NCBI GenBank assembly: GCA_002269645.1
Contig: NIVC01001283.1
Location: 62,001 to 126,000, forward strand
Direction of reading: 5' to 3'
Source of the DNA: Macrostomum lignano
Lineage: Eukaryota
Length of the DNA stretch: 64,000 nucleotides
Part shown: positions 5,550-61,779 of the stretch, one piece after another
Layout: the number at the start of each line of letters is the position of its first letter
How positions within the stretch are numbered: the stretch's first letter is position 1
Program-made: the position numbers and the translations under genes
The notes under the pieces: model-generated
Database searches by the model: none
Told to the model about the DNA's origin: nothing
The model's input: only the letters and a program-made list of their open reading frames with translations

Positions 5550-6390
<841 letters not shown>

Positions 6391-10787: not shown

Positions 10788-11678
<891 letters not shown>

Positions 11679-17101: not shown

Positions 17102-17756
<655 letters not shown>

Positions 17757-28678: not shown

Positions 28679-31600
28679 AGCTCTCTCTTCATCACTCATG
28701 GGATCTTTGCAACAACCGAGGTCCTCGCGCTGTGCAGCGAATGCTCCCCTGGCCGCCAACTGACGGCGAAAAAAGTCCTGCCAGAATTTTGGCGAAGTGC
28801 CGAAACAAAATTTATGCACGCATTCGAGATGCGATGGAGATTCGAACTGGCTGAGACCGTCATTGAGATGCGGCCCGCGCTGCCCCCCCCACTGCTGTGC
28901 CCTGCCTTCACCCGCCTCCTGCCTGCACTACCACTTTATCTTGACCCGTGGGCTTGGTGTACTCTCTCCTCTCTCTTATCCCCCCTCTCTCTTATCCCCT
29001 TTCTCTTTTCTTTTCTCTCCTCTCTCCTCTCTCCTCTCTCCTCTCTCTTATCCCCTCTCTCTCCTCCCCTCTCTCCTCTCTCCTCCCCTCTCTCCTCTCT
29101 CCTCCCCTCTCTCCTCTCTCCTCCCCTCTCTCCTCTCTCCTCCCCTCTCTCCTCTCCCCTCTCTTCTCTCTCTTCTCTCGTCTCCCCTCTCTCCTCCCTC
29201 TCATCTCCTCTGTTTTCTTGTCTGCTCCCTTCTCTCCTCTCTACTCCAGTATACTCTCTACCCGGAAGCCACCAGCTGAGATAGGCTCGCTTCTGAGAAT
29301 TTATACCCTACAAATCAGGTTGCAGCACAGAACTGCAGCCTATTTTCCTGTGACTAGAGTTTATCAGTCTCAGGGATAATTAGACTCAAAGACACAAAGG
29401 ATAGAACAGAGGGTAGAACAGAGGGTAGAACAGAGGGTAGAACAGAGGGTAGAACAGAGGGTAGAACAGAGGATAGAACAGAGGGTAGAACAGAGGGTAG
29501 GGCAGAGGGTAGAACAGAGGATAGAACAGAGAGTAGAACAGAGGGTAGAACAGAGGATAGAACAGAGGGTAGAACAGAGGATAGAACAGAGGATAGAACA
29601 GAGGATAGAACAGAGGATAGAACAGAGAGTAGAACAGAGGGTAGAACAGAGGATAGAACAGAGGGTAGAACAGAGGGTAGAACAGAGGGTAGAACAGAGG
29701 GTAGAACAGAGGGTAGAACAGAGGATAGAACAGAGGGTAGAACAGAGGGTAGAACAGAGGGCAGAAGAGAGGATAAACAGAGGGTAAAACAGAGGGTAGA
29801 ACCGAGGATAGAACAGAGGGTAGAACAGAGGGTAGAACAGAGGGTAGAACAGAGGATAGAACGAATGATAGAACAGAGGATAGAACAGAGGGTAGGGCAC
29901 AGGGTAGAACAAAGGATAGAACAGAGGATAGAACAGAGGATAGAACAGAGGGTAAAACAGAGGGTAGAACAGAGGGTAGAACAGAGAATAGAACAGAGGA
30001 TAGAACAGAGGATAGAACAGAGGTTAGAACAGAGGATAGAACAGAGGGTAGAACAGAGGGTAGAACAAATGATAGAACAGAGGATAGAACAGAGGGTAGA
30101 ACAGAGGGTAGAACAGAGGATAGAACAGAGGGTAGAACAGAGGGTAGAACAAATGATAGAACAGAGGATAGAACAGAGGGTAGGGCACAGGGTAGAACAA
30201 AGGATAGAACAGAGGATAGAACAGAGGATAGAACAGAGGGTAAAACAGAGGGTAGAACAGAGGGTAGAACAGAGAATAGAACAGAGGATAGAACAAAGGA
30301 TAGAACAGAGGATAGAACAGAGGATAGAACAGAGGATAGAACAGAGGGTAGAACAGAGGGTAGAACAGAGGGTAGAACAGAGGGTAGAACAGAGGGTAAA
30401 ACAGAGGGTAGAACAGAGGGTAGAACCGAGGGTAGAACAGAGGGTAGAACAGAGGGTAGAACAGTGAATGAAATCAGTGCAGTTGGAAACGCAACAAAAT
30501 GCGGTTATTAAAATTATCAATAGCTCCACAATACTCCTGATAGCAAGTGTTCGATCAGCAAGAACTGCGCACTTTCTCCTAAACGGCTAGAAATAGAAGA
30601 AATCATTGATCAGTCAGCACTGGTTTCAATGTCTGGATAGCCCGTTTACAGGAAATATTTCGTAACAAAAGGTCAAGGAAAACACTGTGGGAGATAAGCC
30701 TGCCTGTTCTGCATGCCCGTCTGCCTGCGAAACACTCGGGTAAGGATTTTTACAGGCCTGGTTGCCATGGCTACAAATTGAAACTGGCTATTGCGACTAA
30801 AGTTTGGTCAATAATTATAAGAAGTTTTCTTTAAATTTCTAGTTCGAATACGTAAAAATTTGTGATGATAAATTTACTAGAAGAAGCCTCATCGTGTATG
30901 AATTAAGGGATTCTGGTTTTAGCAAGGAGAAGATGAAAGACAAACCACAAGGAACTTCCTATGGGGGATCTTAGCATCAGCCAAGTTTTTCAAGGTGAGC
31001 GAACAGAGGGATTGGGATATTCTTCCCCGCTCATGCCTCGCGCCTCCGTTTCCTTGATGCAAAAATTGTTATCCATCCCCTCCGAATCCCCAAAGCCCTG
31101 ATTTTCATCCCGCTGCGCAGACACCCGCAAATGCCGAACCGAACTTGGACAGATTTGCACTTTTACGTCAAATAACAACCTTATCTTTTAGGCTCGATTC
31201 TACAGATCGTAGACGAGTGTCAGGTGAGACTGGGGTGTCAGGTGAGAGACTGGAGTTTTAGGTGAGAGACTGGAGTGTCAGGTGAGAGACTGGAGTTTCA
31301 GGTGAGAAACTGGGGTGTCAGGTGAGAGACTAGGGTGTCAGGTGAGAGATTGGAGTGTCAGGTGAGAGACTGGAGTGTCAGGACCGAGACTGGAGTGTCA
31401 GCTGAGAGACTGGAGTTTCAGGTGAGAGACTGGGGTGTCAGGTGAGAGACTGGGGTGTCAGGTGAGAGATTGGAGTGTCAGGTGAGAGACTGGAGTGTCA
31501 GGACCGAAACTGGAGTGTCAGGTGAGAGACTGGAGTGTCAGGACCGAGACTGGAGTGTCAGGTGAGAGACTGGAGTGTCAGGTGAGAGACTGGAGTGTCA

Positions 31601-36670: not shown

Positions 36671-37299
36671 AAATGCTCAGTTCATTGATTTCTATTGACT
36701 AGGCCAACTAACCGATATGTAGTGTAAAACACTTTTTGCACAGTGATTTCTTCGCTTGTTGCTAGTCTGACAATTTGTTCAGGTGATAATTACGAGGTGA
36801 ATTAGACAATTACATCCCCAGCCTGCTCCAGCCCAGATTTGAGCAGCTTGCTTTAGGAAGCATTAAGCAAATTGAATAATATTTAAAATGCGATCACGTT
36901 TGACTAACAAAAGCAAAACCTGCTCTTCTGACATTGATTGATAGCCTTAAGGATAAGATTCTTGAATTTAAAATTGCTTTCAATGTTAAATTCCGAATCA
37001 CTATGTAGCTATTGAGAGTATGAGCAGAGAGAAACGTGACTGCTGGCTGATGATGAACACTTCGGGTCCTCCAGTTTGATGTTTGGCTAGAAAATTAGCA
37101 TTGTTTGCACTGAATCCTGTTCAATTGTAAGCTGCGGTGTCTGCAGGGAGTCGATGTGTCTATCCGCTTCCGAGTGGTAGCGGTCCTGCTTCCTGAATGT
37201 CTATTGAACTGCCTTTCTAGTCGCTTGCATCTCTCCCTACCCTCCTGCCTCTCCCTTCCTCTCTCTCTTCCCCTCTCTCCCTTCCTCTCCATCTTCCTT

Positions 37300-37885
37300 C
37301 ACTCGCTTCCTCTCTGTCTCAACTCTCTCCCTTCCTCTCTGTCTCCAATCTCTCCCTTCCTCTCTGTCTCAACTCTCTCCCTTCCTCTCTGTCTCCAATC
37401 TCTCCCTTCCTCTCTGTCTCAACTCTCTCCCTTCCTCTCTGTCTCAACTCTCTCCCTTCCTCTCTGTCTCAACTCTCTCCCTTCCTCTCTGTCTCAACTC
37501 TCTCCCTTCCTCTCTGTCTCAACTCTCTCCCTTCCTCTCTGTCTCCAATCTCTCCCTTCCTCTCTGTCTCAACTCTCTCCCTTCCTCTCTGTCTCCAATC
37601 TCTCCCTTCCTCTCTGTCTCCAATCTCTCCCTTCCTCTCTGTCTCAACTCTCTCCCTTCCTCTCTGTCTCCAATCTCTCCCTTCCTCTCTGTCTCCAATC
37701 TCTCCCTTCCTCTCTGTCTCCAATCTCTCCCTTCCTCTCTGTCTCCAATCTCTCCCTTCCTCTCTGTCTCCAATCTCTCCCTTCCTCTCTGTCTCCAATC
37801 TCTCCCTTCCTCTCTGTCTCCAATCTCTCCCTTCCTCTCTGTCTCCAATCTCTCCCTTCCTCTCTGTCTCCAATCTCTCCCTTCC
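37300..37885. repeat. 24-25 bp CT-rich minisatellite
   Basis: CTCTCCCTTCCTCTCTGTCTCCAAT. Confidence 0.95.
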
Positions 37886-38156
37886 TGTCTCGGTCTCCCC
37901 TTTATACCTTCCTCGCTCATATTTTACATTATAAAGCACAAAAACAACAAAACTCCAAATGAATACAGATTTAACCTGAACTGATAACAAGGTATTAACA
38001 CCTAGAAGTTTGTGAAATGACCATTTGTACTTAGTTATAGTGTATTTACATGCATGCAGATACAGCAACATTCATTTTGTGCTCAGGAGAGGATGGCTAC
38101 GCTTCAAACAACCAGTGGAGTTCCTGACATCAGACAAAACCGAGACATGACAGACT

Positions 38157-39291
38157 TTAATCGCTGCTTTCGCGTTCCTTGGCGTTGCGCCACTTCATCC
38201 TGCGATTTTGGAACCAGATCTTCACCTGGAAGGCGGGAGCGAGGGCAGATAGAAGGGATTAAAGGATCAATAGTTCATCTTCTAACCAACTACCAACCGC
38301 CTAATCTTCTAACCAACCACCAACTACTGATAGTTCCCCATCTGAATCTGGCTAATACCACCTGAGATTCACCTGAGAGTCTCTCAGTCCCAGCCTGTCA
38401 GCCAGCAGTCTCACCTGAGAGTCTCTCAGTCCCAGCCTGTCAGCTAGCAGTCTCACCTGAGAGTCTCTCAGTCCCAGCCTGTCAGCCAGCAGTCTCACCT
38501 GAGAGTCTCTCAGTCCCAGCCTGTCAGCTAGCAGTCTCCGGTCGGGCTTGCCGATGTACTTCTGCTGCTGGAAGGCCTTCTCGAGACCGCGTCGCTGCGA
38601 CTCGCTGAACACTGCCCGACGAAGGACTCCACCGATGACTCGGCCGCTGACGCCACCGACTCCGTCACGGACAGGGCTTGCATCAACGGCTGGTAGAAAT
38701 TGAGGCTGAGGCTGGAGCTGGTGCTGCAGCTGGTACTGCAGCTGGCTTTGAAGCAGGTGTTGCTGGTGCTGCTGCAGCTGCAACAGCTGATGATGAAGGG
38801 TCTGCAGCTGGCTCAGCGGCGGCAGGGGCTGCTGCAGGCCTGCGTGGAAGGCGATCGACAAAGCGTAATTTTTCAGGGGCGATTTTGAATTGGGCGGTTT
38901 TAGGGGCGATTTTTAGGGGCGATTTTGAATTGGGACGATTTCGAATAGGGGCGCGTGAGGGCCACTCACCGCTGTCAGCTGTTGCAGACGCAAAGGCGCC
39001 GCTATGATGAGGCGCAGAGCCTGGACTAGCAGCAGCATGGGAAAGCAGCAGTCGGTGCTGTTGAGCTTGAAGCAGCAAGTGCGGCGGAGGCGGAAGCGGC
39101 CCCAGCATCCGGAAGCGGCTGGCTGAGCAGCCAATGTTGAGAATTGCAGAGACGCCAAATTTAAGCCTGTCGGAAGCGGGGGCGGAAGCGGGGGCGGAAG
39201 CGGGGGCGGAAGCGGGGGCGGAAGCGGGGGCGGAAGCGGGGGCGGAAGCGGGGGCGGCAGAAGCGGCGGCGACTTGCAGTGAGTTGTCCAT
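38157..39291 (-). CDS. dbx: Dbx (developing brain homeobox) family homeodomain protein, about 243 aa; exons 38970-39291, 38499-38839, 38157-38225
   Basis: eh1 motif LKFGVSAIL in exon 1. Spliced homeodomain VLRRAVFSESQRRGLEKAFQQQKYIGKPDRRLLADRLGLRDSQ|VKIWFQNRRMKWRNAKE has Dbx-diagnostic LRRAVFS and QKYI-KPDR. GT-AG introns in phases 1 and 0; the second falls at the Q|V position of helix 3. Confidence 0.93.
38371..38537 (-). repeat. 42-bp tandem duplication x4 spanning the Dbx exon 2 donor
   Basis: Each unit encodes RLLADRLGLRDSQV; CAG|GT exon ends at 38499, 38457, 38415, 38373. Confidence 0.95.
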
Positions 39292-39614
39292 GAAAATTTT
39301 GTTTTAAAATAGTTGTTTTTTTTTTTAAAAACAGTGAAGAATGAAGTTCTGATTAGCCTGAAATAATCAGGTGCTTCAAATACAGATAATTTCTTTCTAC
39401 TTAACAGCTACACAAGTCGGACTTCTAATTGGCCCGAGGAGGGGGCTAAGACAGCCAATTAGAAAAGGGTGAAAATTGAATGATATATGCCGGCCAATGA
39501 GAGCTCATCAGTATTTGATTATGAACCATAGGCGAAACGAACACATAAATGTAATTAATTTCGGCATTATAGTTTTAGAATGAGTTATATGGATAGGGTG
39601 CTTAACTATCAGAT

Positions 39615-42600
39615 GTGGTGATTTACCTGTCAGATAGGGCTGATTTACCTGTCAGATAGGGCTGATTGCTTTGTCAGATACGGTGTTTCACATGTCAAAT
39701 AGGGTGATTTACCTGTCAGATGGGGTGATTTACCTGTCAGATACTGTGATTTACCTGTCAGATACTGTGATTTACCTGTCAGATACGGTGATTTACCTGT
39801 CAGATAGGGCTGATTTACCTGTCAGATACGGTGATTTACCTGTCAGATACGGTGATTTACGAATCAGATAGGGTGATTTCCCTGTCAGATACGGTGATTT
39901 ACCTGTCAGATACGGTGATTTATCTGTCAGATACGGTGATTTACCTGTCAGATAGGGCTGATTTACCTGTCAGATACGGTGATTTACCTGTCAGATACGG
40001 TGATTTACGAATCAGATAGGGTGATTTCCCTGTCAGATACGGTGATTTACCTGTCAGATACGGTGATTTACCTGTCAGATACGGTGATTTACCTGTCAGA
40101 TACGGTGATTTACGAATCAGATAGGGTGATTTCCCTGTCAGATACTGTGATTTACCTGTCAGATACGGTGATTTACCTGTCAGATACGGTGATTTACCTG
40201 TCAGATAGGGCTGATTTACCTGTCAGATACGGTGATTTACCTGTCAGATACGGTGATTTACCTGTCAGATAGGGCTGATTTACCTGTCAGATACGGTGAT
40301 TTACCTGTCAGATAGGGCTGATTTACCTGTCAGATACAGTGATTTACCTGTCAGATAGGGCTGATTTCCCTGTCAGATACGGTGATTTACCTGTCAGATA
40401 CGGTGATTTACCTGTCAGATACGGTGATTTACGAATCAGATAGGGTGATTTCCCTGTCAGATACGGTGATTTACCTGTCAGATAGGGCTGATTTACCTGT
40501 CAGATACGGTGATTTACCTGTCAGATACGGTGATTTACGAATCAGATAGGGTGATTTCCCTGTCAGATACGGTGATTTACCTGTCAGATACGGTGATTTA
40601 CCTGTCAGATACGGTGATTTACGAATCAGATAGGGTGATTTCCCTGTCAGATACGGTGATTTACCTGTCAGATACGGTGATTTACCTGTCAGATACGGTG
40701 ATTTACCTGTCAGATACGGTGATTTACCTGTCAGATAGGGCTGATTTACCTGTCAGATACGGTGATTTACCTGTCAGATACGGTGATTTACGAATCAGAT
40801 AGGGTGATTTCCCTGTCAGATACGGTGATTTACCTGTCAGATACGGTGATTTACCTGTCAGATACGGTGATTTACGAATCAGATAGGGTGATTTCCCTGT
40901 CAGATACTGTGATTTACCTGTCAGATACGGTGATTTACCTGTCAGATACGGTGATTTACCTGTCAGATAGGGCTGATTTACCTGTCAGATACGGTGATTT
41001 ACCTGTCAGATACGGTGATTTACCTGTCAGATAGGGCTGATTTACCTGTCAGATACGGTGATTTACCTGTCAGATGGGGTGATTTACCTGTCAGATACTG
41101 TGATTTACCTGTCAGATACTGTGATTTACCTGTCAGATACGGTGATTTACCTGTCAGATAGGGCTGATTTACCTGTCAGATACGGTGATTTACCTGTCAG
41201 ATACGGTGATTTACGAATCAGATAGGGTGATTTCCCTGTCAGATACGGTGATTTACCTGTCAGATACGGTGATTTATCTGTCAGATACGGTGATTTATCT
41301 GTCAGATAGGGCTGATTTACCTGTCAGATACGGTGATTTACCTGTCAGATACGGTGATTTACGAATCAGATAGGGTGATTTCCCTGTCAGATACGGTGAT
41401 TTACCTGTCAGATACGGTGATTTACCTGTCAGATACGGTGATTTACGAATCAGATAGGGTGATTTCCCTGTCAGATACTGTGATTTACCTTTCAGATACG
41501 GTGATTTACCTGTCAGATACGGTGATTTACCTGTCAGATAGGGCTGATTTACCTGTCAGATACGGTGATTTACCTGTCAGATACGGTGATTTACCTGTCA
41601 GATAGGGCTGATTTACCTGTCAGATACGGTGATTTACCTGTCAGATAGGGCTGATTTACCTGTCAGATACAGTGATTTACCTGTCAGATAGGGCTGATTT
41701 CCCTGTCAGATACGGTGATTTACCTGTCAGATACGGTGATTTACCTGTCAGATACGGTGATTTACGAATCAGATAGGGTGATTTCCCTGTCAGATACGGT
41801 GATTTACCTGTCAGATAGGGCTGATTTACCTGTCAGATACGGTGATTTACCTGTCAGATACGGTGATTTACGAATCAGATAGGGTGATTTCCCTGTCAGA
41901 TACGGTGATTTACCTGTCAGATACGGTGATTTACCTGTCAGATACGGTGATTTACGAATCAGATAGGGTGATTTCCCTGTCAGATACGGTGATTTACCTG
42001 TCAGATACGGTGATTTACCTGTCAGATACGGTGATTTACCTGTCAGATACGCTGATTTACCTGTCAGATACGGTGATTTACCTGTCAGATACGGTGATTT
42101 ACGAATCAGATAGGGTGATTTCCCTGTCAGATACGGTGATTTACCTGTCAGATACGGTGATTTACCTGTCAGATACGGTGATTTACGAATCAGATAGGGT
42201 GATTTCCCTGTCAGATACTGTGATTTACCTGTCAGATACGGTGATTTACCTGTCAGATACGGTGATTTACCTGTCAGATAGGGCTGATTTACCTGTCAGA
42301 TACGGTGATTTACCTGTCAGATACGGTGATTTACCTGTCAGATAGGGCTGATTTACCTGTCAGATACGGTGATTTACCTGTCAGATAGGGCTGATTTACC
42401 TGTCAGATACAGTGATTTACCTGTCAGATACGGTGATTTACCTGTCAGATACGGTGATTTACCTGTCAGATACGGTGATTTACGAATCAGATAGGGTGAT
42501 TTCCCTGTCAGATACGGTGATTTACCTGTCAGATAGGGCTGATTTACCTGTCAGATACGGTGATTTACCTGTCAGATACGGTGATTTACGAATCAGATAG

Positions 42601-42722
42601 GGTGATTTCCCTGTCAGATACTGTGATTTACCTGTCAGATACGGTGATTTACCTGTCAGATACGGTGATTTACCTGTCAGATACGGTGATTTACCTGTCA
42701 GATACGGTGATTTAACTGTCAG
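39615..42722. repeat. 21-bp minisatellite, 3.1 kb, with ~1.35-kb higher-order duplication
   Basis: GATTTACCTGTCAGATACGGT; identical variant strings at offset 1354. Confidence 0.97.
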
Positions 42723-43234
42723 GGTATTTAAAGCAAATACCCTATAGGTAATAAAAGCAAAATTTCAGGCAAAAAAATCTGATTCTAAATTGCGCAGAGT
42801 TTCAATCGAAATGCAACAGTTTTTGCTGTCGTTTCGGTAATTAAAACAAAAACCACTTCAAGTTGAATGTTGCAAGCAAGCTTTCCGTTAAGCTGCTGAA
42901 CAAAGTGATAAATTTTTTGTATGGTAAATTTTAATTGGCCATGCACTTGATCGGATTTAGAGTTCTTACAGCTCCTACTACAATCCAGTACTATAAAAGG
43001 CATTTTATTGCCAACTGTTTTAATTGTTGAAAATTGCGCTTCATCAAAATTCGCTAAATTTCTGGCTATTAATGGTGATCTTGGAGACAGATAGGGTGAC
43101 TAATCTCCGGTGCGCCAAGTGGCCTGGGTCATAAATTATTGCTATGGATTAACGAATCCCAAATGTATTGTTGAATGTTGGGTGGATTGGAAGCCAAGCT
43201 TGCAAGCAAACTAAGTGAAACAAAGAACTACTCC

Positions 43235-43635
43235 GTGACTCAGGAAACCAGTGAATGAGTCAGGAAATCGGTGAATGTGTCAGGAAATTGGTGAATGAGT
43301 CAGGAAATCGGTGAATGATTTAGGAAATCAGTGAATGCGTCAGGAAACCAGTGAATGTGTCAGGAAATCGGTGAATGTGTCAGGATATTGGTGAATGAGT
43401 CAGGAAATTGGTGAATGTGTCAGGAAATCAGTAAATGTGTCAGAAAATCGGTGAATGAGTCTGGAAACCAGTGAATGATTTAGGAAATCAGTGAATGCGT
43501 CAGGAAACCGGCTAATGAGTCAGGAAATCAGTGAATGTGTCAGGAAATCGTTGAATGTGTCATGAAATAAATGAATGAGTCAGGAAATCGGTGAAGGAGT
43601 CAGAAAACCAGTAAATGAGTCAGGAGACCAGTAAA
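43235..43635. repeat. 20-bp degenerate minisatellite GTGAATGAGTCAGGAAATCG
   Basis: Directly visible. Confidence 0.92.
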
Positions 43636-44207
43636 TAAGTCACAAAGCAAAGCTGAAGTCAAAGAATGAGAAAAAGTGCAAAAAATGAATAAAAAGCCCG
43701 CTAACTTCAAGTCCGTTAATTGACTATTTAATAATCAGAACTTGCAAACTCGAGAATGAAACAGCCGTTGAAAATTTATTGCAAATTAACAAAACATTTA
43801 ACAATTCATTTAACATGAATTCATTTTCACTAAACAATGAAGAACACAATTAAAGAACTTAATCACCTGAACCAAGGCATTAATTTATCCAGTTAATTAG
43901 TGAATATTGAAAGAAATATTACTAGTAAAAGCAAGAAAAAATTCAAACACCAATGCAAAATAAAGAACACGCATAAAGTTTACTACTTGAAACTGTCATT
44001 AGTAGTAGTACGTAGGACATTTTTGTTTTACCTAATGGTAAAGGATCTTATAACACTGAATTTCACGCAGAATATCTAGAATTTCTTTTCAAACAGCTCA
44101 TTAAACAGTTAAACGAACAGGCTCATCAAATTAATAAAAACATTATCAACAAGTATGCCAACCTTATCCGACACAGATGACAGAAGACTCGAAGCAGTCG
44201 ATCACCC

Positions 44208-46132
44208 TCACGAAACTACAATGGCTCCTTCATCAGCCTGTCTGACCAGCCGTCTGTACTTCGCCAACACGGAGGTGCGAGATCCTCCCGGTGGGTTCGC
44301 TTTCGCCTCGGCCGAAGCCTCCGCAGCCACCGTAGCCGCCTCGGACAGTCGGGCGGCCAGTTCGGACTCGGCCAGTCGGACATTAATTTGTCGGCCGGGA
44401 CCGTCGATTTCAATTTGATCGCCGGTACGAAGCGCGCCGATTGGCCCGCCGACAGCTGACTCTGGGGTCACGTGACCAACTACAAAACCCTTCGTGGCGC
44501 CAGAGAAGCGGCCGTCCGTGATCAGAGCTACGCGGCCAGACAGGCCCCGGCCCTGGAAAATTTTCAGGGAGGGTTATTTAGGCGTGCGTAATTAGGGGAG
44601 AGAGGCTTATTCGGGCGTGCGTACATTGGGGCAGAGGCTTATTCGGGCGTGCGTACATTGGGGGAGAGGCTTATTCGGGCGTGCGTACATTGGGGGAGAG
44701 GCTTATTCGGGCGTGCGTACATTGGGGGGAGAGAGGCTTATTCGCGTGTGCGTAGATTGGGGGGAGAGAGGCTTATTCGGGTGTGCGTACATTGGGGGGA
44801 GAGAGGCTTATTCGTGTGTGCGTAGATTGGGGGGAGAGAGGCTTATTCGGGCGTGCGTACATTGTGGCTAAGAGTGGCCTGCTTAGGCTTCTCTTGCTTT
44901 TATTATAGAATCAATAAATTAGGGTTGCTGAAAGCTTTAAAGGGTTGATTTAAAATGTCGTTATTGGGCGGTTTGGCGATGTACATGTACATCCTAGAGT
45001 ACATGTACAGACACGGTTATGCTAGCATAGAGATTTATTAGTAATTTTTACTTGAATAGCAGCTGTCACGGCCAGCATCTCCCGCATGCCGGGCCCTCCG
45101 ACCGGTCCCTCGTTACGCACAACAACAACGTGGCCAGGTTGGACTTGCCCGCGAGAGACGCCGACATAGGCGGCCTCCTCATTTTCATACACGATAGCCG
45201 GGCCGGAGAAGCTGTCGCCCTCGTCGCCGATCAGTTTGCCAACGGCGCCGTTCGGGCAGAGACTGCCACGGAAGATTATCAGATGACCGGTAGCTTTAAT
45301 CGGATCGGCTGTTAGAAAGCAAGGTTAAAGATAGATCACGATTGGTTGGCGTGCATTACTGAGGGTAGAAAGTTTAAAGAATGAGTGTGGAGAGCGCTGA
45401 TTGGCTGGTGCGGTTCAGCAGGGATAGAAAATGTGGGATGAGTGCGGAGAGTGCTGATTGGCTGGCGGGGTTAACCAGGGATAGAAATGTTAAATGAGTG
45501 CGTAGAGCGCTGATTGGCTGGATATCTCACACATTGGCCGAATAACCTTCTGCCCTGCTGGATAATCCTCCACTCCTTTCAGATCCTCGGCAAGTGTCCG
45601 GCCGGTGCAGGTGACGGCCGAGCCGTGCAGCAGGCCGGCTGACAGCATGCGGCGGAGCAGCGGCCGAAGCCCGCCAGCCTCGTGCAGGTCGGCCATGGCG
45701 TGGCAGCCGCTGGGGAACAGGTCAGCCAGCACGGGGGTTCGCTGGAACACCGATTGGAGTTCGTCCAGGCCAAAGTCAGCCAGGCCGGCCTCCCTGGCGA
45801 TGGCTACCAGATGCAGGCAGGCGTTGGTGGAGCCGCCCAGCGCGGAAACCACGGCGGCCGCATTCTCCAGCGCCTGTCTCGTGACAATGTCGCGCGGCCG
45901 AATCCCGCACCGCATCATGTTGGCTAGCGCGGCGCCAACCAGATGGCGCGCCTGGCGCCGTTTCTCTTCACTGACGGCCGGCGGCGAGGCGTCGCCGGGC
46001 AGAGCGAGGCCCATAGCCTCCAGGGCGCAGGACATTGTGTTGGCGGTGTACATGCCCGCGCAGGAGCCCGGCCCGGGATGGCGCACTCCTCAATGTCCGA
46101 CAGCTCCTGCCGCGGTGGGGGTGGGACGAATA

Positions 46133-46203
<71 letters not shown>

Positions 46204-46816
46204 TAGACATACAGGCAGACAGGCAGACACGTGGACAGACAGTCCGATCGCCAACCTTGTCGCTGACGCTGCCTTTGTGGTAGCCGCCGATGGCCTCATA
46301 GACGGTGCGGATGTCCACCTTGTCGCCCTTCGGGCCGCAGCCGGGCAGGATGCTGCCACCGTAGACAAACAGGGCGGGCCGGTTGATCCGCAACATGGCC
46401 ATGGCCATGCCTGGCATGTTCTTGTCGCAGGCGCCCAGGCAGACCAGGCCGTCAAAGCCTTCGGCCAGCGTCACCGTCTCGATGGAGTCGGCGATGACCT
46501 CGCGGCTGATCAGCGACAGCCGCATGCCAGGCGTGCCCATGCTGATGCCGTCGCTGACCGTGACGGTGTTGAAGTGCATCGGCACCAGCCCGGCCTCGCG
46601 GACCGATTCGCCCGCCAGGTCCTGCAGCTCGCGCAGATTCAAATTGCACGGAGTGACGGTGGCCCAGCAGGACACCACGCCAACCTGCGGCCGGGCAAAA
46701 TCGGCGCTTTTCAATCCGACGCCGCGTAGCATCGAGCGGGCGCCGGCGCGGTCGGGGCCATCGACGACTAGCGCAGAGTGCGGGCGGGGCAGCGCGGCAG
46801 CGGAGTCGGAGGACAT
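44208..46816 (-). CDS. ilvD: Dihydroxy-acid dehydratase (IlvD/Ilv3), about 579 aa; exons 46256-46816, 45531-46106, 45052-45308, 44208-44552; apparent 1-nt deletion near 46076
   Basis: Family motifs in order: [65 protein letters not shown]. Three GT-AG introns with compatible phases (0,1,0). Exon 2 is 576 nt where 577 is needed. Confidence 0.93.
44590..44865. repeat. ~32-34 bp minisatellite in ilvD intron 3
   Basis: GAGGCTTATTCGGGCGTGCGTACATTGGGGGA. Confidence 0.93.
46133..46240. repeat. (GACA)n in ilvD intron 1
   Basis: Directly visible. Confidence 0.95.
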
Positions 46817-46821
46817 GGCGG

Positions 46822-46834
46822 TCTGGACGGAAGT
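46822..46834 (-). promoter_or_regulatory. 3' splice acceptor 6 nt before ilvD ATG (candidate trans-splice site)
   Basis: CTTCCGTCCAG|ACCGCCATG. Confidence 0.55.
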
Positions 46835-46987
46835 TTTTCATTTCTTCGAGGTACTTTTAGCTCGACGCAAATCATCGGTTTATCGGCAAAGTAATTGCTT
46901 TAACTAATTAATTCTGGCACTGCATCCCTTGATCCCTTGACCCCTCGCAGGAGGGCTGCGAGCACGAGCTGTCGCAACTCCTTCGGC

Positions 46988-47290
46988 GCACACCCATTGT
47001 CAGCTATTCAGGTAGCGCCATACCCATTGTCAGCTGTTCAGGTAGCGCCATACCCATTGTCAGCTGTTCAGGTAGCGCCATACCCATTGTCAGCTGTTCA
47101 GGTAGCGCCACACCCATTGTCAGCTATTCGGGTAGCGTCATACCCTTTGTCAGCTGTTCAGGTAGCGCCACACCCATTGTCAGCTGTTCAGGTAGCGCCA
47201 CACCCATTGTCAGCTGTTCAGGTAGCGCTACACCCATTGTCAGCTGTTCAGGTAGCGCCATACCCATTGTCAGCTGTTCAGGTAGCGCCA
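46988..47290. repeat. 30-bp minisatellite between UQCRQ and ilvD
   Basis: CACCCATTGTCAGCTGTTCAGGTAGCGCCA. Confidence 0.95.
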
Positions 47291-47861
47291 CCGCCCCTCG
47301 TTGAATTATTTTGCATGCCCAACAGGGGTCTCTGTTAACAAAGCAAAATACAGATTGTCTTGACAGATAAAACTTACCGTTAGAACGGATTGGACTATCT
47401 GAGTAAACAGCTGGTAGATAAAATAAGCAGCTCCAATAAAGTTATGGACTATCTCATATATATGCTGAATAGGTGCAGGCTAACACACACGGACGCACCT
47501 GGCGAATTCTCTGCGCATAGTAACACGTTTCAAGAGCCCACTTGAAATGCGCGCATAAACAAAAGCTTGGGCATTGCATGCCTTACGGCAGAAATAAGAC
47601 AGGCATAAGACGAAAACTTGAAATGTTTTAATATTTATTACTATCTAGTTGATTAATTATTTTAAACTTTCATTCTATTTCTGAGCAACAGAAGAGAGGC
47701 GATGTTACACGGAGTTGATAGAGAGGGTGGGCGGTTTAGTAGATCTACCTACTTAAACACTACTGATCTAACTACTCGCAAGATGCTACTTTCCCAGTAG
47801 TAGAATTGGGCTTCGCGTGTAATATAGTTTGGGTTAATTAAAAATATTAATTAGCAGTTTC

Positions 47862-48134
47862 TCATAGCTCGCCATTCTGAGCAGCCTCCTGCTCAAAGAA
47901 GGCCGGGTCCTTTCGCTTAGTTTTCTCGTTGGCCTCCTTGCCCCAGGTGATGATCAGGTAGGCGCCAGCGAATGGCGGCACAACGCGAAAGAATTCTTCG
48001 CTGACCCGGCGCAACGCATTCCAGGGAGCCTTGGTGAGCAGGCCGCGGAACGGGTGCAGCTCGTTCGGCGACACCGAATAGTAGATGATGCCCCGAACAT
48101 AGGCCATGCCCTGGCCCAGGCCTTTGTGCACCAT
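47862..48134 (-). CDS. UQCRQ: Cytochrome b-c1 complex subunit 8 (UQCRQ/QCR8), 90 aa, intronless
   Basis: GLGQGMAYVRGIIYYSVSPNELHPF...RRVSEEFFRVVPPF...TM...KRKDPAFFE matches the QCR8 pattern (G-hydrophobic-G N-terminus, YSxSP, VVPPF, RKxP) and length. Confidence 0.92.
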   Translation of the reverse strand: MVHKGLGQGMAYVRGIIYYSVSPNELHPFRGLLTKAPWNALRRVSEEFFRVVPPFAGAYLIITWGKEANEKTKRKDPAFFEQEAAQNGEL

Positions 48135-49906: not shown

Positions 49907-52900
49907 TCACTGTTTCACATTCAACAGCAGTTGATTTCGCGCATTGACAAGAATTTTAAAAGCCTCTTCGCTGCCAGGAGCGACGCTTTTGTCCGGGTGC
50001 AGCAGCACGGCCAGGCGGCGGTACGCCTTGTTGATGTCCTCTCTGCGGGGCGCGGCGGGTCCACTGCCGGTTAGGGACTGGCGGGACTGGGGTAGGGACT
50101 GGCAGGACTGGGGTAGGGACTGGCCAGTCTGGGGTAGGGACTGGCAGGATGGGGTAGGGACTGGCAGGATGGGGTAGGGACTGGCGGGACTGGGGTAGGG
50201 ACTGGCAGGATGGGGTAGGGACTGGCCAGTCTGGGGTAGAGACTGGCGGGATGGGGTAGGGACTGGCCAGTCTGGGGTAGGGACTGGCAGGATGGGGTAG
50301 GGACTGGCAGGATGGGGTAGGGACTGGCCAGTCTGGGGTAGGGACTGGCAGGATGGGGTAGGGACTGGCCAGTCTGGGGTAGAGACTGGCGGGATGGGGT
50401 AGGGACTGGCCAGTCTGGGGTAGGGACTGGCAGGATGGGGTAGGGACTGGCCAGTCTGGGGTAGAGACTGGCGGGATGGGGTAGGGACTGGCCAGTCTGG
50501 GGTAGAGACTGGCGGGATGGGGTAGGGACTGGCCAGTCTGGGGTAGGGACTGGCCAGTCTGGGATAGGGACTGGTGGGACTGGGGTAGGGACTGGCCAGT
50601 CTGGGGTAGGGACTGGCGGGACTGGGGTAGGGACTGGCCAGTCTGGGATAGGGACTGGCGGGACTGGGGTAGGGACTGGCCAGTCTGGGATAGGGACTGG
50701 AGGTACTGGGGTAGGGACTGGCCAGTCTGGGGTAGGGACTGGCAGGATGGGGTAGGGACTGGCAGTACTGGGGTAGGGACTGGCCAGTCTGCGGTAGGGA
50801 CTGGTGGGACTGGGGTAGGGACTGGCCAGTCTGGGGTAGGGACTGGCGGGACTGGCCAGTCTGGGATAGGGACTGGCGGTACTGGGGTAGGGACTGGCGG
50901 GACTGGGGTAGGGATAATAATGGCGGGACTGAGGGATGAGTATGGCGAGACTGAACAATGAGCATGGTAGCAGATCAGGAACTCACTTAGTGCAATTCTG
51001 AGCGATGCCCAGTCTCTCGTAGTTGTCTCTGCCACTCTTCAGCTTCTTAATAGCTTCAATCTGTTCGGTGTTGTAGCCCAGCTGCACAGGAATCGGCTGC
51101 GGCTTCTTGCCGGAGATCACGGCCTCCACGACACCGTCGAATAGGCATTTGAACATCTCGCTGACCCCGTCGCCATTCAGAGCCGAGGTCTCAAAGTACG
51201 GATAGCCGCGCGCATCTGACCACAGGCGACCTTCGAGTTCGTCAACAACTCGCGCCTGCTTCTTGTCCACCTGCCAGATTGAAAATTTAATGTGTATATA
51301 CTGCCTGAGGATGATAGTCAGGCCCGCTGGACACCTTGTGCGTGTGCTGATGGATAAGCGAAACGGACAAAGGCTACTTGCCTACTCGCTACCTGCGCAT
51401 CGACTGGCGCCTCTCCTCTCCCCCCTTCTCCTCTTCCTCTCCCCACCTCTTCTCTTCCCATTCCTCTCCTCAGTCACATCTACTCTTCTCTCTCCCTCGT
51501 CAACCCTCTCTCCTACTCTTCTCTTCCCTTCCTCTTCTCCCCCTCTCTTCTCCTCTTCCCCTCCTCTCTTCTCCTCTTCCCCTCCTCTCTTCTCCTCTTC
51601 ACCTCCTCTCTTCTCCTCTTCCCCTCCTCTCTTCTCCTCTTCCCCTCCTCTCTTCTCCTCTTCCCCTCCTCTTCCCCTCCTCTCTTCTCCTCTTCAACTC
51701 CTCTCTTCTCCTCTTCCCCTCCTCTCTTCTCCTCTTCAACTCCTCTCTTCTCCTCTTCCCCCTCTCTTCTCCTCTTCCCCTCCTCTCTTCTCCTCTTCCC
51801 CTCCTCTCTTCTCCTCTTCAACTCCTCTCTTCTCCTCTTCCCCTCCTCTCTTCTCCTCTTCCCCTCCTCTCTTCTCCTCTTCCCCTCCTCTCTTCTTCTC
51901 TTCCCATCCTCTCTTCTTCTCTTCCCCTCCTCTCTTCTTCTCTTCCCCTCCTCTCTTCTTCTCTTCCCCTCCTCTCTTCTTCTCTTCCCCTCCTCTCTTC
52001 TTCTCTTCCCCTCCTCTCTTCTTCTCTTCCCCTCCTCTCTTCTTCTCTTCCCCTCCTCTCTTCTTCTCTTCCCCTCCTCTCTTCTTCTCTTCCCCTCCTC
52101 TCTTCTTCTCTTCCCCTCCTCTCTTCTTCTCTTCCCCTCCTATCCTATACTCTCCTCTCTTTTCCTACTCTCCCATCATCTCATCCTCTCCTTTTTATCT
52201 CTTCTCTTCTCAGCCTCATTTCCACTGTCACCCACATTTAACAAACAATATTTCTAAGTGATATTCAAACCTTATTGGCGCAGACTATAAAATACGCGGA
52301 GTCGAACTCGGCAATATGCTTGGCGCCCAGTTCAGATTTCATCTCCTTGATCCAGGCGTCTAAGGATTCAAAGCTGGCCCGGTTGGTGACGTCATAGACT
52401 AGCATGACGCCTTGGACGTCGCGGTAAAACTCGTTGCGGACCTCGTAGAACACGGGATGGCCAGCGAAGTCGAAGATGTTCACTTTGACGTCGCGGTCGC
52501 CCACTGTCACTCTGGGGAGACGAGGAGAGCACCAGGGTTACTGAGGATCTGGGAGGCTGGCCCAGCAACTAAGGATCTGGGAGGCTGCCCTAGCAACTGG
52601 GGATCTGGGAGGCTGGCCCAGCAACTGAGGATCTGGGAGGCTGCCCTAGCAACTGGGGATTTGGGAGGCTGGCCTAGCAACTGGGGATTTGGGAGGCTGG
52701 TACAGCAACTGAGGATCTGGGAGGCTGGCCCAGCAACTGGGGATTTGGGAAGGTGGTCTAGCAACTAAGGATCTTGGAAGCTGGCCCATCAACTATGGAT
52801 CTGGGAAGTTGGCCCAGCAACTAAGGATCTGGGAGGCTGCCCTAGCAACTGGGGATCTGGGAGGCTGGTACAGCAACTGAGGATCTGGGAGGCTGCCCTA

Positions 52901-53411
52901 GCAACTGGGGATCTGGGAGGCTGGTACAGCAACTGAGGATCTGGGAGGCTGGTCCAGTAACTGAGGATCTGGGAGGCTGGTACAGCAACTGAGGATCTGG
53001 GAGGCTGGCACAGCAACTGAGGATCTGGGAGGCTGGTACAGCAACTGAGGATCTGGGAGGCTGGCACAGCAACTGAGGATCTGGGAGGCTGGCCCAGCAA
53101 AATCTGAGCTTCATAATAAACGGTTGCAAAGTTCATAACGTACTTAGTAACGCCAAAGTCGATGCCGATGGTCATCAAGTACTTTTGTACGAATCGTTTC
53201 TCGCAGTAGCGTTTAATAATGCAGCTCTGTTTTAAAAGAAAGAAACAACAGTTAAATGATTGCTTTTCGCAATATTCACAGCGAAAAATAGTCAAATTAT
53301 TATTTAAAAGTACACACGCAGACACTAGCTCACCTTGCCGGTATCCGAGTTGCCCATGCTAATGATTTTGATGCGAAACACCTTTGCGGGATCATTTTTG
53401 TCTAAAGTCAT
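49907..53411 (-). CDS. DNAJC27: DNAJC27 (Rab-like GTPase plus C-terminal J domain), 273 aa; exons 53334-53411, 53144-53226, 52271-52511, 50987-51270, 49907-50042
   Basis: Spliced product has G1 GNSDTGK|S, TIGIDFG, G3 variant DFAGH, EVRNEFY, G4 ANK|VD, G5 ETSA, then J domain EDINKAYRRLAVLLHPDK. All four introns are GT-AG with phases 0,2,0,2. Confidence 0.95.
50072..50915. repeat. G-rich minisatellite in DNAJC27 intron 4
   Basis: TGGGGTAGGGACTGGC core with CAGGA/CAGTC/GGGA variants. Confidence 0.96.
51400..52150. repeat. CT-rich 21-bp repeat in DNAJC27 intron 3
   Basis: CTCTTCCCCTCCTCTCTT(C/T)TC. Confidence 0.95.
52540..53100. repeat. 28-bp minisatellite in DNAJC27 intron 2
   Basis: GCAACTGAGGATCTGGGAGGCTGGCCCA. 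Confidence 0.95.
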
Positions 53412-53627: not shown

Positions 53628-54668
53628 ACCCACCTCAGGATCTGAGGGTAGCGGAAGAGAACCACCTCAGGATCTGAGGGTAGTGGAAGAGAACCACCTC
53701 AGGATCTGAGGGTAGTGGAAGAGAACCACCTCAGGATCTGAGGGTAGTGGAAGAGAACCACCTCAGGATCTGAGGGTAGTGGAAGAGAACCACCTCAGGA
53801 TCTGAGGGTAGTGGAAGAGAACCACCTCAGGATCTGAGGGTAGCGGAAGAGAACCACCTCAGGATCTGAGGGTAGCGGAAGAGAACCACCTCAGGATCTG
53901 AGGGTAGCGGAAGAGAACCACCTCAGGATCTGAGGGTAGCGGAAGAGAACCACCTCAGGATCTGAGGGTAGTGGAAGAGAACCACCTCAGGATCTGAGGG
54001 TAGCGGAAGAGAACCACCTCAGGATCTGAGGGTAGCGGAAGAGAACCGCCTGAGGATCTGAGGGTAGCGGAAGAGAACCGCCTGAGGATCTGAGGGTAGC
54101 GGAAGAGAACCGCCTGAGGATCTGAGGGTAGCGGAAGAGAACCGCCTGAGGATCTGAGGGTAGCGGAAGAGAACCGCCTGAGGATCTGAGGGTAGCGGAA
54201 GAGAACCGCCTGAGGATCTGAGGGTAGCGGAAGAGAACCGCCTGAGGATCTGAGGGTAGCGGAAGAGACACGCCAGAGGATCTGAGGGTAGCGGAAGAGA
54301 ACCGCCTGAGGATCTGAGGGTAGCGGAAGAGAACCGCCTGAGGATCTGAGGGTAGCGGAAGAGAACCGCCTGAGGATCTGAAGGTAGCGGAAGAGAACCG
54401 CCTGAGGATCTGAAGGTAGCGGAAGAGAACCGCCTGAGGATCTGAGGGTAGCGGAAGAGACACGCCAGAGGATCTGAGGGTAGCGGAAGAGACACGCCAG
54501 AGGATCTGAGGGTAGCGGAAGAGACACGCCAGAGGATCTGAGGGTAGCGGAAGAGACACGCCAGAGGATCTGAGGGTAGCGGAAGAGACACGCCAGAGGA
54601 TCTGAGGGTAGCGGAAGAGACACGCCAGAGGATCTGAGGGTAGCGGAAGAGACACGCCAGAGGATCTG
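53628..54668. repeat. 32-bp minisatellite between FKBP12 and DNAJC27
   Basis: GAGGATCTGAGGGTAGCGGAAGAGAACCGCCT, with polar variant blocks. Confidence 0.97.
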
Positions 54669-55202
54669 CACTATAGATTAACTGCAATATATATATATAT
54701 ATATATATTAAAACAATACAATACTTATATTTAGCACACGTAGAATGCAACAACAGATTTTATTTCAATTTCAGATGGTTGGTAAACATTCGAAAAGAAG
54801 CACAATTAACACTAGGGAACTTGGTAACAGTGAACAACAAAGTAACAGGGTAATTATTTGTACTCTATAAAAAGAAAAAAATGGTTTGTCAATTTCTGGG
54901 TTTGGATTGTAATATAGAATTGCAATAAACTACGGAAAGCTGTCATAATGTTGAATTTATTACTACACAATTAGCATAATTCGGTCATTAATAATAATAT
55001 CTTGAAACCGGGTTTAATTACTATTTGCTCGAATATTTTACTACTCACGGTGAGTAGACTAATAAGACTGTGTTGACAAAATTTGTTTTAAAAAATTTGA
55101 ACATTTAAAATTTAACATACAGACTACAGCAATAAAAGGGGCTAAGCAGAAAAGTTATAAGACAACAGCTAACAGACAAGCAGGTACGGATCAGGTCTCA
55201 AT

Positions 55203-55529
55203 TCACTTGTAGTTGATCAGCTCAACCTCGAACACGAGGGTGGAGTTGGGCGGAATCACGGGCGGATAGCCCCTAGCTCCGTAGGCGAAGTCCGGTGTAC
55301 AGGTGAGCTTAGCAACTTCGCCTTTGCTCATCTGGGCGACGCCCTCGTCCCAGCCTTTGATGACTTCGCCAGCGCCGAGTCTGAATTGGAATGGCTTGCC
55401 GCGGTCGCGGCTGGAGTCGAACTTGTTGCCATTGGTCAGGGTGCCAACGTAGTGCACTGTGACCGTGCAGCCTTTCGGCGGATAGGAGCAGTTGTCGCCC
55501 TGCTTGATGGTTTCTACTTTGACGCCCAT
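55203..55529 (-). CDS. FKBP12: FKBP12-type peptidyl-prolyl isomerase, 108 aa, intronless
   Basis: [12 protein letters not shown]...[45 protein letters not shown]...[22 protein letters not shown] is canonical FKBP12 sequence and length. Confidence 0.97.
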
Positions 55530-55552
55530 TGTGCTTTATAGGTTTGTTGTTG

Positions 55553-55570
55553 TCTGGTAACTGGGAGAGA
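55553..55570 (-). promoter_or_regulatory. 3' splice acceptor 24 nt before FKBP12 ATG
   Basis: TCTCTCCCAGTTACCAG|ACAACA...CACAATG. Confidence 0.55.
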
Positions 55571-55614
55571 CGCTTACAGCAGCAATGTTGAATTTCGTGA
55601 TGGTGATAAACTCA

Positions 55615-56682
55615 GTACAGACTCAATATTCTCAAATACAGACTCTCTATATTCTCAAATACAGACTCTCTATATTCTCAAATACAGACTCACTATATTC
55701 TCAAATACAGACTCTCTATATTCTCAAATACAGACTCACTATATTCTCAAATACAGACTCTCTATATTCTCAAATACAGACTCACTATATTCTCAAATAC
55801 AGACTCTCTATATTCTCAAATACAGACTCACTATATTCTCAAATACAGACTCTCTATATTCTCAAATACAGACTCACTATATTCTCAAATACAGACTCTC
55901 TATATTCTCAAATACAGACTCACTATATTCTCAAATACAGACTCTCTATATTCTCAAATACAGACTCACTATATTCTCAAATACAGACTCTCTATATTCT
56001 CAAATACAGACTCACTATATTCTCAAATACAGACTCTCTATATTCTCAAATACAGACTCACTATATTCTCAAATACAGACTCTCTATATTCTCAAATACA
56101 GACTCACTATATTCTCAAATACAGACTCTCTATATTCTCAAATACAGACTCACTATATTCTCAAATACAGACTCTCTATATTCTCAAATACAGACTCACT
56201 ATATTCTCAAATACAGACTCTCTATATTCTCAAATACAGACTCACTATATTCTCAAATACAGACTCTATATTCTCAAATACAGACTCTCTATATTCTCAA
56301 ATACAGACTCTCTATATTCTCAAATACAGACTCACTATATTCTCAAATACAGACTCTATATTCTCAAATACAGACTCTCTATATTCTCAAATACAGACTC
56401 TATATTCTCAAATACAGACTCTCTATATTCTCAAATACAGACTCACTATATTCTCAAATACAGACTCTATATTTTCAAATACAGACTCTCTATATTCTCA
56501 AATACAGACTCTCTATATTCTCAAATACAGACTCTCTATATTCTCAAATACGGACTCTCTATATTCTCAAATACAGACTCTCTATATTCTCAAATACAGA
56601 CTCTATATTCTCAAATACAGACTCTCTATATTCTCAAATACGGACTCTATATCCTCAAATAGACTCTATATTCTCAAATACA
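55615..56682. repeat. 23-bp minisatellite between C2orf69-like and FKBP12
   Basis: TATTCTCAAATACAGACTC(T/A)CTA, with alternating dimeric variants. Confidence 0.97.
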
Positions 56683-57125
56683 AAATCTACACATGTATAA
56701 GTTTATCTGACCTAATCAATTTTATAACTCTCCAAAATTACTTTTAAAGAAAGTTAGATATTAAGTCAGTATACTTTAGATTTACTATTAAACAAAGTGA
56801 ACATAGTGCAATAGAAATGACAAACTTGAGACTGACATAATTAATACAAACAAGCTAACGGCATTAAAAATCTCATTATAAAATTACCTAAAAAGAAATT
56901 ACACAATTATCACACTTTACCTACCAAAGACATATTGAACTACTAAAAGTAAAATGTACCGAATATGCAATGTCGTTATTTTATTTAACATAGTGGTTAA
57001 GCAGCACGTGTGAACAAAAATGCTTTCAGAAGCCAATCAGTTAACTAATCAGTTGCTAGATGAGCTATAAATCAATTAATCAGATAGGCAATAAATCAAT
57101 CAATATCATTCAGACAGAAAATAAA

Positions 57126-59589
<2,464 letters not shown>

Positions 59590-59937: not shown

Positions 59938-60075
59938 AATCGACCCATCTGCAATAATTTTAACGCCAACAAATGCTTCCGCAAGGCCTGCCATTTCCAA
60001 CATATCTGCCGAGTCTGCAAGGGCAACCACCCGGCCTGTGCGCACGAGTTGGGTGCAGAAGCTACAAAAAACTGA
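59938..60075 (+). pseudogene. gag C-terminal zinc-finger remnant of the YR retrotransposon
   Basis: NRPICNNFNANKCFRKACHFQHICRVCKGNHPACAHELGAEATKN*: Cys/His-rich finger immediately before pol, with no start codon or upstream gag body. Confidence 0.7.
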
Positions 60076-61750: not shown

Positions 61751-61779
61751 TTCTATCAATCTTTCCTCTCACAGGTTCA

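Follow-up and report, generated by a model that had tools for sequence, protein, structure and literature searches.

A bacterial-type dihydroxy-acid dehydratase gene with introns, probably of old bacterial descent, in the flatworm Macrostomum lignano

Animals are textbook auxotrophs for valine (Val), isoleucine (Ile) and leucine (Leu). How, then, does a gene for branched-chain amino acid (BCAA) synthesis come to lie in the DNA of the flatworm Macrostomum lignano, and is it a stray bacterial fragment, a relic, an ancestral inheritance or an acquired animal gene? We addressed this question for IlvD, a gene of the dihydroxy-acid dehydratase (DHAD) family, in a 64-kb stretch of contig NIVC01001283.1 (assembly Mlig_3_7, GCA_002269645.1). 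The whole stretch was analysed and is called the window here, and all coordinates are positions in it. The gene spans exactly 44208-46816 on the minus strand, ~100 kb inside an M. lignano contig of 320,490 bp, and animal genes flank it on either side. We consider it rather probable that IlvD is an intron-bearing nuclear gene of M. lignano that derives from an old transfer from a bacterium and gained its introns afterwards. This reading is favoured because of its database matches, its position in a tree, its GC content at third codon positions (GC3) and the lack of bacterial remnants at its flanks, taken together.

Structure and reading frame of the IlvD gene

Three-frame translation of the minus strand over 44100-46900, landmark strings and exon assembly resolved the gene into four exons (Table 1). 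All three introns are of the GT..AG type, all three acceptors are CAG, and two of the donors are near GT[G/A]AG; CAG acceptors and GT[G/A]AG donors are the consensus reported for M. lignano (PMC8629364). Tandem repeats dominate each intron (Tandem Repeats Finder: (ACAG)n at 46133-46229, a 57-mer at 45380-45521 and a 35-mer at 44569-44864), and neither the 35-mer nor the 57-mer has a further occurrence within the window. The GC content was 61-68% in the exons and 48-55% in the introns. The exon junctions agree with two UniProt models of the same species, A0A1I8ISI1 and A0A1I8IYW7, the first of which is 100% identical to the product of exon 1, and bacterial homologues aligned colinearly and without gaps over these junctions. 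A preliminary description of this DNA had reported three repeat-filled GT-AG introns, and all three were recovered, with lengths of 149, 222 and 499 nt and with tandem repeat making up most of each.

The same description had given the gene a full-length protein of 579 amino acids (aa), which does not hold for the sequence as given. The spliced coding sequence (CDS) is 1739 nt long, which is not a multiple of three, and its reading frame is broken; the frameshift had been missed, and the 579-aa product is obtained solely after one base (or X) is added. The missing base was located in CCCGGGCC^GGGC (46070-46071, minus strand), directly ahead of the third cluster cysteine, where the window reads ATC CCG GGC C-GG GCT CC and ATC CCG GGC CCG GGC TCC is expected. 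Past this site the given frame soon meets stops, and the homologous continuation sits in the +1 frame. A0A1I8ISI1 and A0A1I8IYW7, which were both modelled on the ML2 assembly, carry no break at this site and read PGPGSC. Compared with the repaired window protein, A0A1I8ISI1 has P at the frameshift codon and differs solely by N551D, and A0A1I8IYW7 shows 2 substitutions together with 4-5 short indel-type anomalies, which are frame-shifted readings of the same DNA (e.g. GRIGPR, SSPTPSRR). The pattern in A0A1I8IYW7 is typical of long-read consensus error and suggests that indels are frequent in these PacBio assemblies. Both published M. lignano assemblies are PacBio-based, from a genome that is very rich in repeats and duplicated in part (PMC5730564). 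Exact look-ups of the UQCRQ and FKBP proteins, aimed at a second genomic copy or another assembly of the site, gave this contig alone, and A0A1I8IYW7 had no entry. Because indel differences outnumber substitutions and the lesion lies in a G/C run, an assembly error is a likelier cause of the frameshift than a mutation, and the most likely one is an indel error in a homopolymer of the PacBio-based assembly.

A splice that would rescue the frame, from a phase-1 GTATGT donor in intron 1 to a GAGGAG/ acceptor, was also considered. It swaps a homology-supported decapeptide for unrelated residues and was rejected as contrived.

Protein family and bacterial affinity

Judged by its sequence, the protein is a member of the bacterial-type [2Fe-2S] dihydroxy-acid dehydratase family (ilvD, EC 4.2.1.9). 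It matched both Pfam domains over their full length (PF00920 ILVD_EDD_N, 1.6e-117, profile 1-315/316; PF24877 ILV_EDD_C, 1e-62, 1-191/191) and, with the frameshift bridged by X, passed the NCBIfam cut-offs of NF002068 (729.5 vs 644) and of the ilvD equivalog TIGR00110 (652.3 vs 618.15). Scores for the sister subfamilies were far under their cut-offs (L-arabinonate 345 vs 882, Edd 222 vs 708, YjhG/YagF 206 vs 808), as was the score for the xylonate dehydratase model, and assignment as a sugar-acid dehydratase is ruled out by these cut-offs. The top solved structures are DHADs (9ix7, 541.7 bits; Arabidopsis, ~509 bits; 6ovt, 502 bits), with sugar-acid dehydratases reaching at most 274 bits. C57 (PCN), C130-D131-K132 (CDK), C203 (GSCxGMYTAN), E456 (GMREM) and S482 (RFSG) all fall in invariant columns and line up with their counterparts in the fungal and plant enzymes of known structure. 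Their roles, with C57, C130 and C203 at the cluster alongside the Asp-Lys of CDK, the Glu and the Ser, are presumably those described for published structures. The three [2Fe-2S]-type cluster cysteines named in the preliminary description are these same invariant residues of PCN, CDK and the third cysteine motif. Its remark that no mitochondrial presequence is obvious stands as well: the flatworm N-terminus is colinear with bacterial MNSSKPRPYSSKVVDG, acidic residues are present, and there is no extension.

In a diverse sample of 100 members of the family, conservation reaches 90% or more in 87 columns. Flatworm IlvD matches 85 of them, with two conservative deviations (L392F and A497S), which equals the family median; taken with its 46 deviations at 260 columns conserved in the nearest bacterial clade, it has diverged far but kept its core. 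Residues ~535-556 (44208-44360, minus strand) form an Ala/Glu-rich low-complexity insertion relative to the bacterial homologues, ahead of the conserved C-terminal LAKY motif.

Canonical DHAD activity is most likely, given that the cluster, Mg2+ and catalytic motifs are kept. The predicted enzyme would act in the cytosol, to judge from the missing presequence, and would dehydrate 2,3-dihydroxy-isovalerate and 2,3-dihydroxy-3-methylvalerate to 2-keto acids, from which the worm's own branched-chain aminotransferases would produce Val and Ile.

The best database match was the M. lignano cluster itself, A0A1I8IYW7 (96%) with A0A1I8ISI1 as a member. The next best 119 clusters hold prokaryote-length proteins of 556-596 aa from metagenomes and metagenome-assembled genomes, at 53-58% identity and 637-660 bits, and the named ones are all bacterial (Ca. 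Mycalebacterium, Puniceicoccaceae, Opitutaceae, Opitutales, Limisphaera, Kiritimatiellaceae, Vicinamibacterales and Acidobacteria). Among the best 120 matches in this database, which includes UniRef, no other eukaryote was found. A scan of GTDB with one genome per species gave best matches of 52-56% identity in Verrucomicrobia, Opitutaceae, Steroidobacteraceae, Woeseiaceae, Dadabacteria and Acidobacteriota. After clustering of a library at 50% identity, M. lignano IlvD stands as its own representative, with the next one at 50%; the representatives checked are bacterial, apart from the fungus Wallemia and from P0127, which groups with the plant enzyme. A search with exon 1 only returned nothing but fragments at 55-62% identity, the named few being bacterial or from marine metagenomes, and since the M. 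lignano cluster itself was unlisted there, this search says little on absence. Across these matches the nearest bacteria are Verrucomicrobiota, Acidobacteriota, Gammaproteobacteria (Woeseiaceae and Steroidobacteraceae) and Dadabacteria, and no single donor is picked out. Because the nearest of them are only 53-58% identical, the transfer would be old or the gene fast-evolving.

A neighbour-joining (NJ) tree was built from 101 sequences, only four of them eukaryotic, over 549 columns with Kimura distances and 100 bootstraps. Flatworm IlvD was placed on a long branch as sister to the bacterial clade of top hits (bootstrap 74/100), and in 79 of the 100 bootstraps its nearest group consisted solely of those bacteria. 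The fungal 9ix7 and Wallemia, and Arabidopsis with P0127, were placed elsewhere, with Chitinophaga. Kimura distances from the flatworm protein were 0.81-0.86 for the fungal and plant sequences vs 0.59-0.65 for the bacterial matches. The preliminary description had proposed a phylogeny as a check and had left horizontal transfer with intron gain and vertical retention side by side. As run here by NJ, with its four eukaryotic sequences, the check puts the flatworm protein beside the bacterial clade and the fungi and plants elsewhere; together with the bacterial matches and their scores this fits transfer and not vertical retention.

The GC3 of IlvD (0.766) is close to that of UQCRQ (0.769), and a G-protein-coupled receptor (GPCR) gene in the window has 0.84. 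When 20 kb around the gene were compared by tblastx with 80 bacterial ilvD loci and their flanks, no remnants of bacterial neighbour genes were detected, only spurious short matches. Transfer most likely ran from a bacterium to the flatworm, as matches and tree suggest. Only the open reading frame (ORF) would have been kept from the donor DNA; three spliceosomal introns would have been gained after the transfer and later filled by tandem repeats common in the genome, and the base composition would then have shifted to match that of the host, as the host-like GC3 suggests.

Alternatives to an old bacterial transfer

Several points weigh against an old transfer that left a working animal gene. 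As given, the sequence of IlvD does not form an uninterrupted reading frame, the annotation of the record calls no gene for it, and the only pointer to its expression is the way in which the UniProt models begin. No orthologue was retrieved from another flatworm in the same database searches, whose flatworm coverage is uncertain. In the tree, the flatworm protein is sister to the bacterial clade and not nested in it, with moderate support, by the NJ method and with four eukaryotic sequences. Where the nearest bacterial clade shows conservation of 95% or more (260 columns), it deviates at 46 columns, which could reflect relaxed constraint or changed function. Finally, if acetohydroxyacid synthase (AHAS) and ketol-acid reductoisomerase (KARI) are absent, the canonical role would have no worm-made substrate.

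A bacterial fragment mis-joined into a flatworm contig, through contamination or chimeric assembly, would account for sequence similarity that is wholly bacterial and for exons of 61-68% GC in a window of 48% GC. This explanation is effectively refuted: the ORF is split by three GT..AG introns, flatworm-type tandem repeats lie within the gene and on both flanks, animal genes stand on either side of the locus, which lies ~100 kb inside a contig of 320 kb, an independent assembly yields the same gene, again adjoining UQCRQ, and the GC3 of IlvD equals that of the neighbouring host gene. The preliminary description had already argued from animal neighbours (UQCRQ, DNAJC27 and a homeobox gene) against a bacterial contaminant contig, and on both counts it was right, with UcrQ, Ras plus DnaJ and a homeobox helix-3 exon identified among the metazoan genes that flank IlvD on this M. 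lignano contig. A decaying pseudogene, by which the transfer did take place but the frameshift is genuine and this copy, or every copy, is non-functional, would agree with a CDS that is out of frame by one base, with the several frame-shifted stretches in A0A1I8IYW7, the second M. lignano model, with the missing gene call at the locus and with the many deviations from clade-conserved positions. However, the lesion is a single one in 1740 nt, and once the frame is restored there is no in-frame stop in any exon. All six splice sites are intact, the family-wide conserved residues are retained at the family median (85/87), the lesion falls within a G/C homopolymer context of a PacBio/Canu assembly, and A0A1I8ISI1, from the other assembly and the same locus, is intact at the site and one substitution away. 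We regard a relic as unlikely.

Spliceosomal introns, host-like codon composition and housekeeping-gene neighbours are also what vertical inheritance would lead one to expect, with an ancestral opisthokont or eukaryotic DHAD kept by the flatworm lineage and lost by most animals, and a bacterial affinity that is "sister to" rather than "nested in", with moderate support, speaks for it too. It is nevertheless highly improbable, since the fungal (9ix7, Wallemia) and plant sequences stand elsewhere in the tree at the larger distances, no other eukaryote appears in the best 120 matches (UniRef included), the N-terminal targeting extension of the fungal and plant enzymes is missing, and the exon junctions cut sequence that is colinear with bacterial proteins. 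A functional enzyme might otherwise have been repurposed for another 2,3-dihydroxy acid or a sugar acid, or might use intermediates supplied by diet or microbes, rather than serve a complete worm-encoded BCAA pathway. To our knowledge, AHAS and KARI are not known to be encoded by animals. Promiscuous sugar-acid dehydratases belong to the IlvD/Edd family, and the flatworm protein carries lineage-specific changes by its motifs (PCNLN for PCNMH, GSCAG for GSCGG, FSGATKG for FSGGSHG and MLAVT for MLAPT). Against this, its score exceeds the curated cut-off of the ilvD equivalog and falls far short of those for arabinonate, xylonate and Edd, the substituted positions vary among genuine DHADs, and family-wide conservation flags only L392F and A497S; such a change of substrate or source seems distinctly unlikely. 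An old bacterium-derived transfer that gained introns is the reading that we retain.

Surroundings, expression and comparison with known systems

IlvD lies simply ~1 kb downstream of UQCRQ, and the "housekeeping cluster" of the preliminary description overstated this arrangement. The contig record matches the window base for base over 58134-37862 (20,273 bases), its gene calls contain nothing between UQCRQ and 37862, and IlvD and the homeobox gene downstream of it are both unannotated (37862-47861). The GPCR at 23468-25333 has a long third loop and a long C-terminal tail. Beyond the retroelement fragment, ORFs at 61199-62682 (plus strand) had no Pfam match, and an Rfam scan of the window found no known RNA family. 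The window is saturated with long tandem arrays (for example 2311-3633, 4394-6528, 10757-11869, 13902-15558, 16856-17758, 19415-20867, 26440-30529, 37156-37962, 41842-42345, 49956-52261, 53955-56700 and 57340-58204), many of which give open "ORFs" of 200-550 aa (IYLS, VCLS, SALS repeats etc.). Such repeat artefacts account for most of the long ORFs in the window, in keeping with the 15% of the genome that consists of tandem and simple repeats.

Table 1 Features of the IlvD locus and of the remaining window. Slashes mark splice junctions; nt, nucleotides; strand "." denotes none assigned.
Feature	Position	Strand	Details
IlvD exon 1	46256..46816	-	aa 1-187; ATG 46816-46814; C57 (PCN) and C130, D131, K132 (CDK)
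IlvD intron 1	46107..46255	-	149 nt; AAG/GTTGGC...GGCAG/GAG; phase 0; mostly (GTCT)n on the gene strand
IlvD exon 2	45531..46106	-	576 nt as given; C203 and GGSTN motif
Frameshift site (exon 2)	46066..46077	-	reads CCCGGGCCGGGC; intact models imply CCCGGGCCCGGGC; one C lost from CC at 46070-46071
IlvD intron 2	45309..45530	-	222 nt; ATGT/GTGAGA...AACAG/CC; phase 1; 57-nt tandem repeat x2.5
IlvD exon 3	45052..45308	-	257 nt; ends in GGPGMREML motif (E456)
IlvD intron 3	44553..45051	-	499 nt; CAA/GTAAAA...TCCAG/GGC; phase 0; 35-nt tandem repeat x8.8
IlvD exon 4	44208..44552	-	345 nt; TGA 44210-44208; TDGRFSG (S482) and HVTPE
Putative 3' splice acceptor	46817..46828	-	...GTCCAG/ACCGCC; 6 nt upstream of ATG; exon start 46822; trans-splice (spliced leader) or cis
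30-nt tandem repeat x10	46992..47290	.	UQCRQ-IlvD spacer; 299 nt
UQCRQ (cytochrome bc1 subunit 8)	47862..48134	-	single exon, 90 aa; Pfam UcrQ 1.1e-23; called gene in NCBI record
DNAJC27-like	49907-53411	-	273-aa Arf/Ras+DnaJ; Pfam DnaJ 49907-50965, Ras 52789-53325; called gene
C2orf69	58972-59589	-	Pfam; called gene in record
FKBP			called gene in NCBI record, same contig
Homeobox helix-3 exon	near 38216	-	KIWFQNRRMKWRNAKERE; downstream of IlvD
Rhodopsin-family GPCR	23468-25333	-	Pfam 7tm_1; single exon, 621 aa; GC3 0.84
Retroelement fragment	59973-61121	+	reverse transcriptase RVT_1 1.8e-08

Upstream of IlvD, the UQCRQ stop codon lies 1038 nt before the putative acceptor on the same strand, or ~740 nt when the tandem array is subtracted, and the IlvD ATG has a purine at -3. 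The acceptor near 46822 agrees with the trans-splice acceptor motif of M. lignano in its TNCAG part (PMC8629364). A0A1I8IYW7 begins with TAMSSD, that is, at the first base past this acceptor, and A0A1I8ISI1 joins UQCRQ codon 51 to the same base; that a UniProt model starts at the acceptor suggests that these models are transcript-derived. In M. lignano, 30-39% of genes are trans-spliced and operon-like units exist; ~7% of transcriptional units code for at least two proteins, and operons are taken as repeat-adjusted spacers of <1 kb (PMC5730564, PMC8629364). Because a CAG acceptor stands 6 nt before the ATG and the gene follows UQCRQ on the same strand at ~1 kb, we infer that the IlvD mRNA may be trans-spliced to the spliced leader (SL) at 46822; UQCRQ and IlvD might share a primary transcript.

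The M. lignano SL ends in ...TTGCATG (PMC8629364), and an SL joined at 46822 would read ATG-ACC-GCC-ATG, in frame with IlvD, which makes an upstream start codon possible (MTAMSSD...). The chimera in A0A1I8ISI1 runs from UQCRQ residues 1-51 (48134-47979), by way of a GTGCCG donor within the UQCRQ CDS, to the acceptor at 46822, and could reflect read-through transcription or an artefact of the gene model.

UniProt already lists the protein under automatically assigned names, and the acquisition of microbial amino-acid-pathway genes by animals is a known kind of event. A literature search (Macrostomum with dihydroxy-acid; M. lignano with horizontal gene transfer, BCAA or amino-acid biosynthesis) returned nothing relevant to this gene within the library searched. 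Because the reference copy has a one-base indel and no annotation on the contig, automated pipelines will miss IlvD or fuse it to UQCRQ. As an old acquisition, IlvD would record the passage of a bacterial ORF into an animal gene, with introns gained, codon use matched to the host and SL trans-splicing probably acquired. A farther-reaching proposal, which we put forward as doubtful, is that M. lignano, perhaps the genus, rebuilt the Val/Ile pathway partly or wholly from acquired bacterial genes, with a cytosolic DHAD working on Fe-S clusters supplied by the cytosolic iron-sulphur cluster assembly (CIA) machinery. If true, the worm would rely less, or not at all, on branched-chain amino acids from its diet, and the locus would show a bacterial ORF turned into an SL-trans-spliced, intron-bearing animal gene within an operon-like unit. 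M. lignano is genetically tractable, and since both transgenesis and RNA interference exist for it, the function is directly testable.

Among known systems, the bacterial [2Fe-2S] IlvD enzymes (NF002068/TIGR00110; examples from Opitutaceae, Puniceicoccaceae, Limisphaera, Vicinamibacterales, Woeseiaceae, Steroidobacteraceae and Ca. Mycalebacterium) resemble the flatworm protein in length, in colinearity from residue ~10 to the C-terminus, in their two Pfam domains, in the same Cys, Asp-Lys, Glu and Ser motifs and in having no targeting peptide. The flatworm gene differs from them in its identity of only 53-58%, its 46/260 changes at clade-conserved columns, its three introns, its C-terminal Ala/Glu-rich insertion and its place on an animal chromosome. 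Fungal Ilv3 and plant DHAD (9ix7; Arabidopsis 5ze4 and 8hs0) share the family, the cluster type and the motifs, but score ~510-540 bits vs ~640-660 for the bacterial proteins, are more distant in the tree and are organelle-targeted with N-terminal extensions, whereas the flatworm enzyme has none. A0A1I8ISI1 and A0A1I8IYW7 are the same M. lignano gene under automatic annotation, and both read through the frameshift site of the window; A0A1I8ISI1 shares all exon junctions and has aa 1-51 of UQCRQ fused to it, hence its name "Cytochrome b-c1 complex subunit 8".

The closest precedent in an animal is the bdelloid rotifer Adineta ricciae, in which foreign KARI and DHAD transcripts were suggested to carry the native metabolism further towards Val and Ile (Boschetti et al. 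2012, PMC3499245). Both animals have a non-metazoan DHAD, seen as transcripts in the rotifer and as a genomic gene in the flatworm. They belong to different phyla, and the rotifer has KARI too, whereas DHAD alone is known from the flatworm, which adds documented linkage and introns. The two acquisitions were probably independent, because no rotifer protein is among the best 120 matches of the flatworm IlvD. A chromosomal, intron-bearing and apparently well-conserved bacterial ilvD in a flatworm would be the second independent regain by an animal of an "essential" amino-acid step, after that in bdelloid rotifers.

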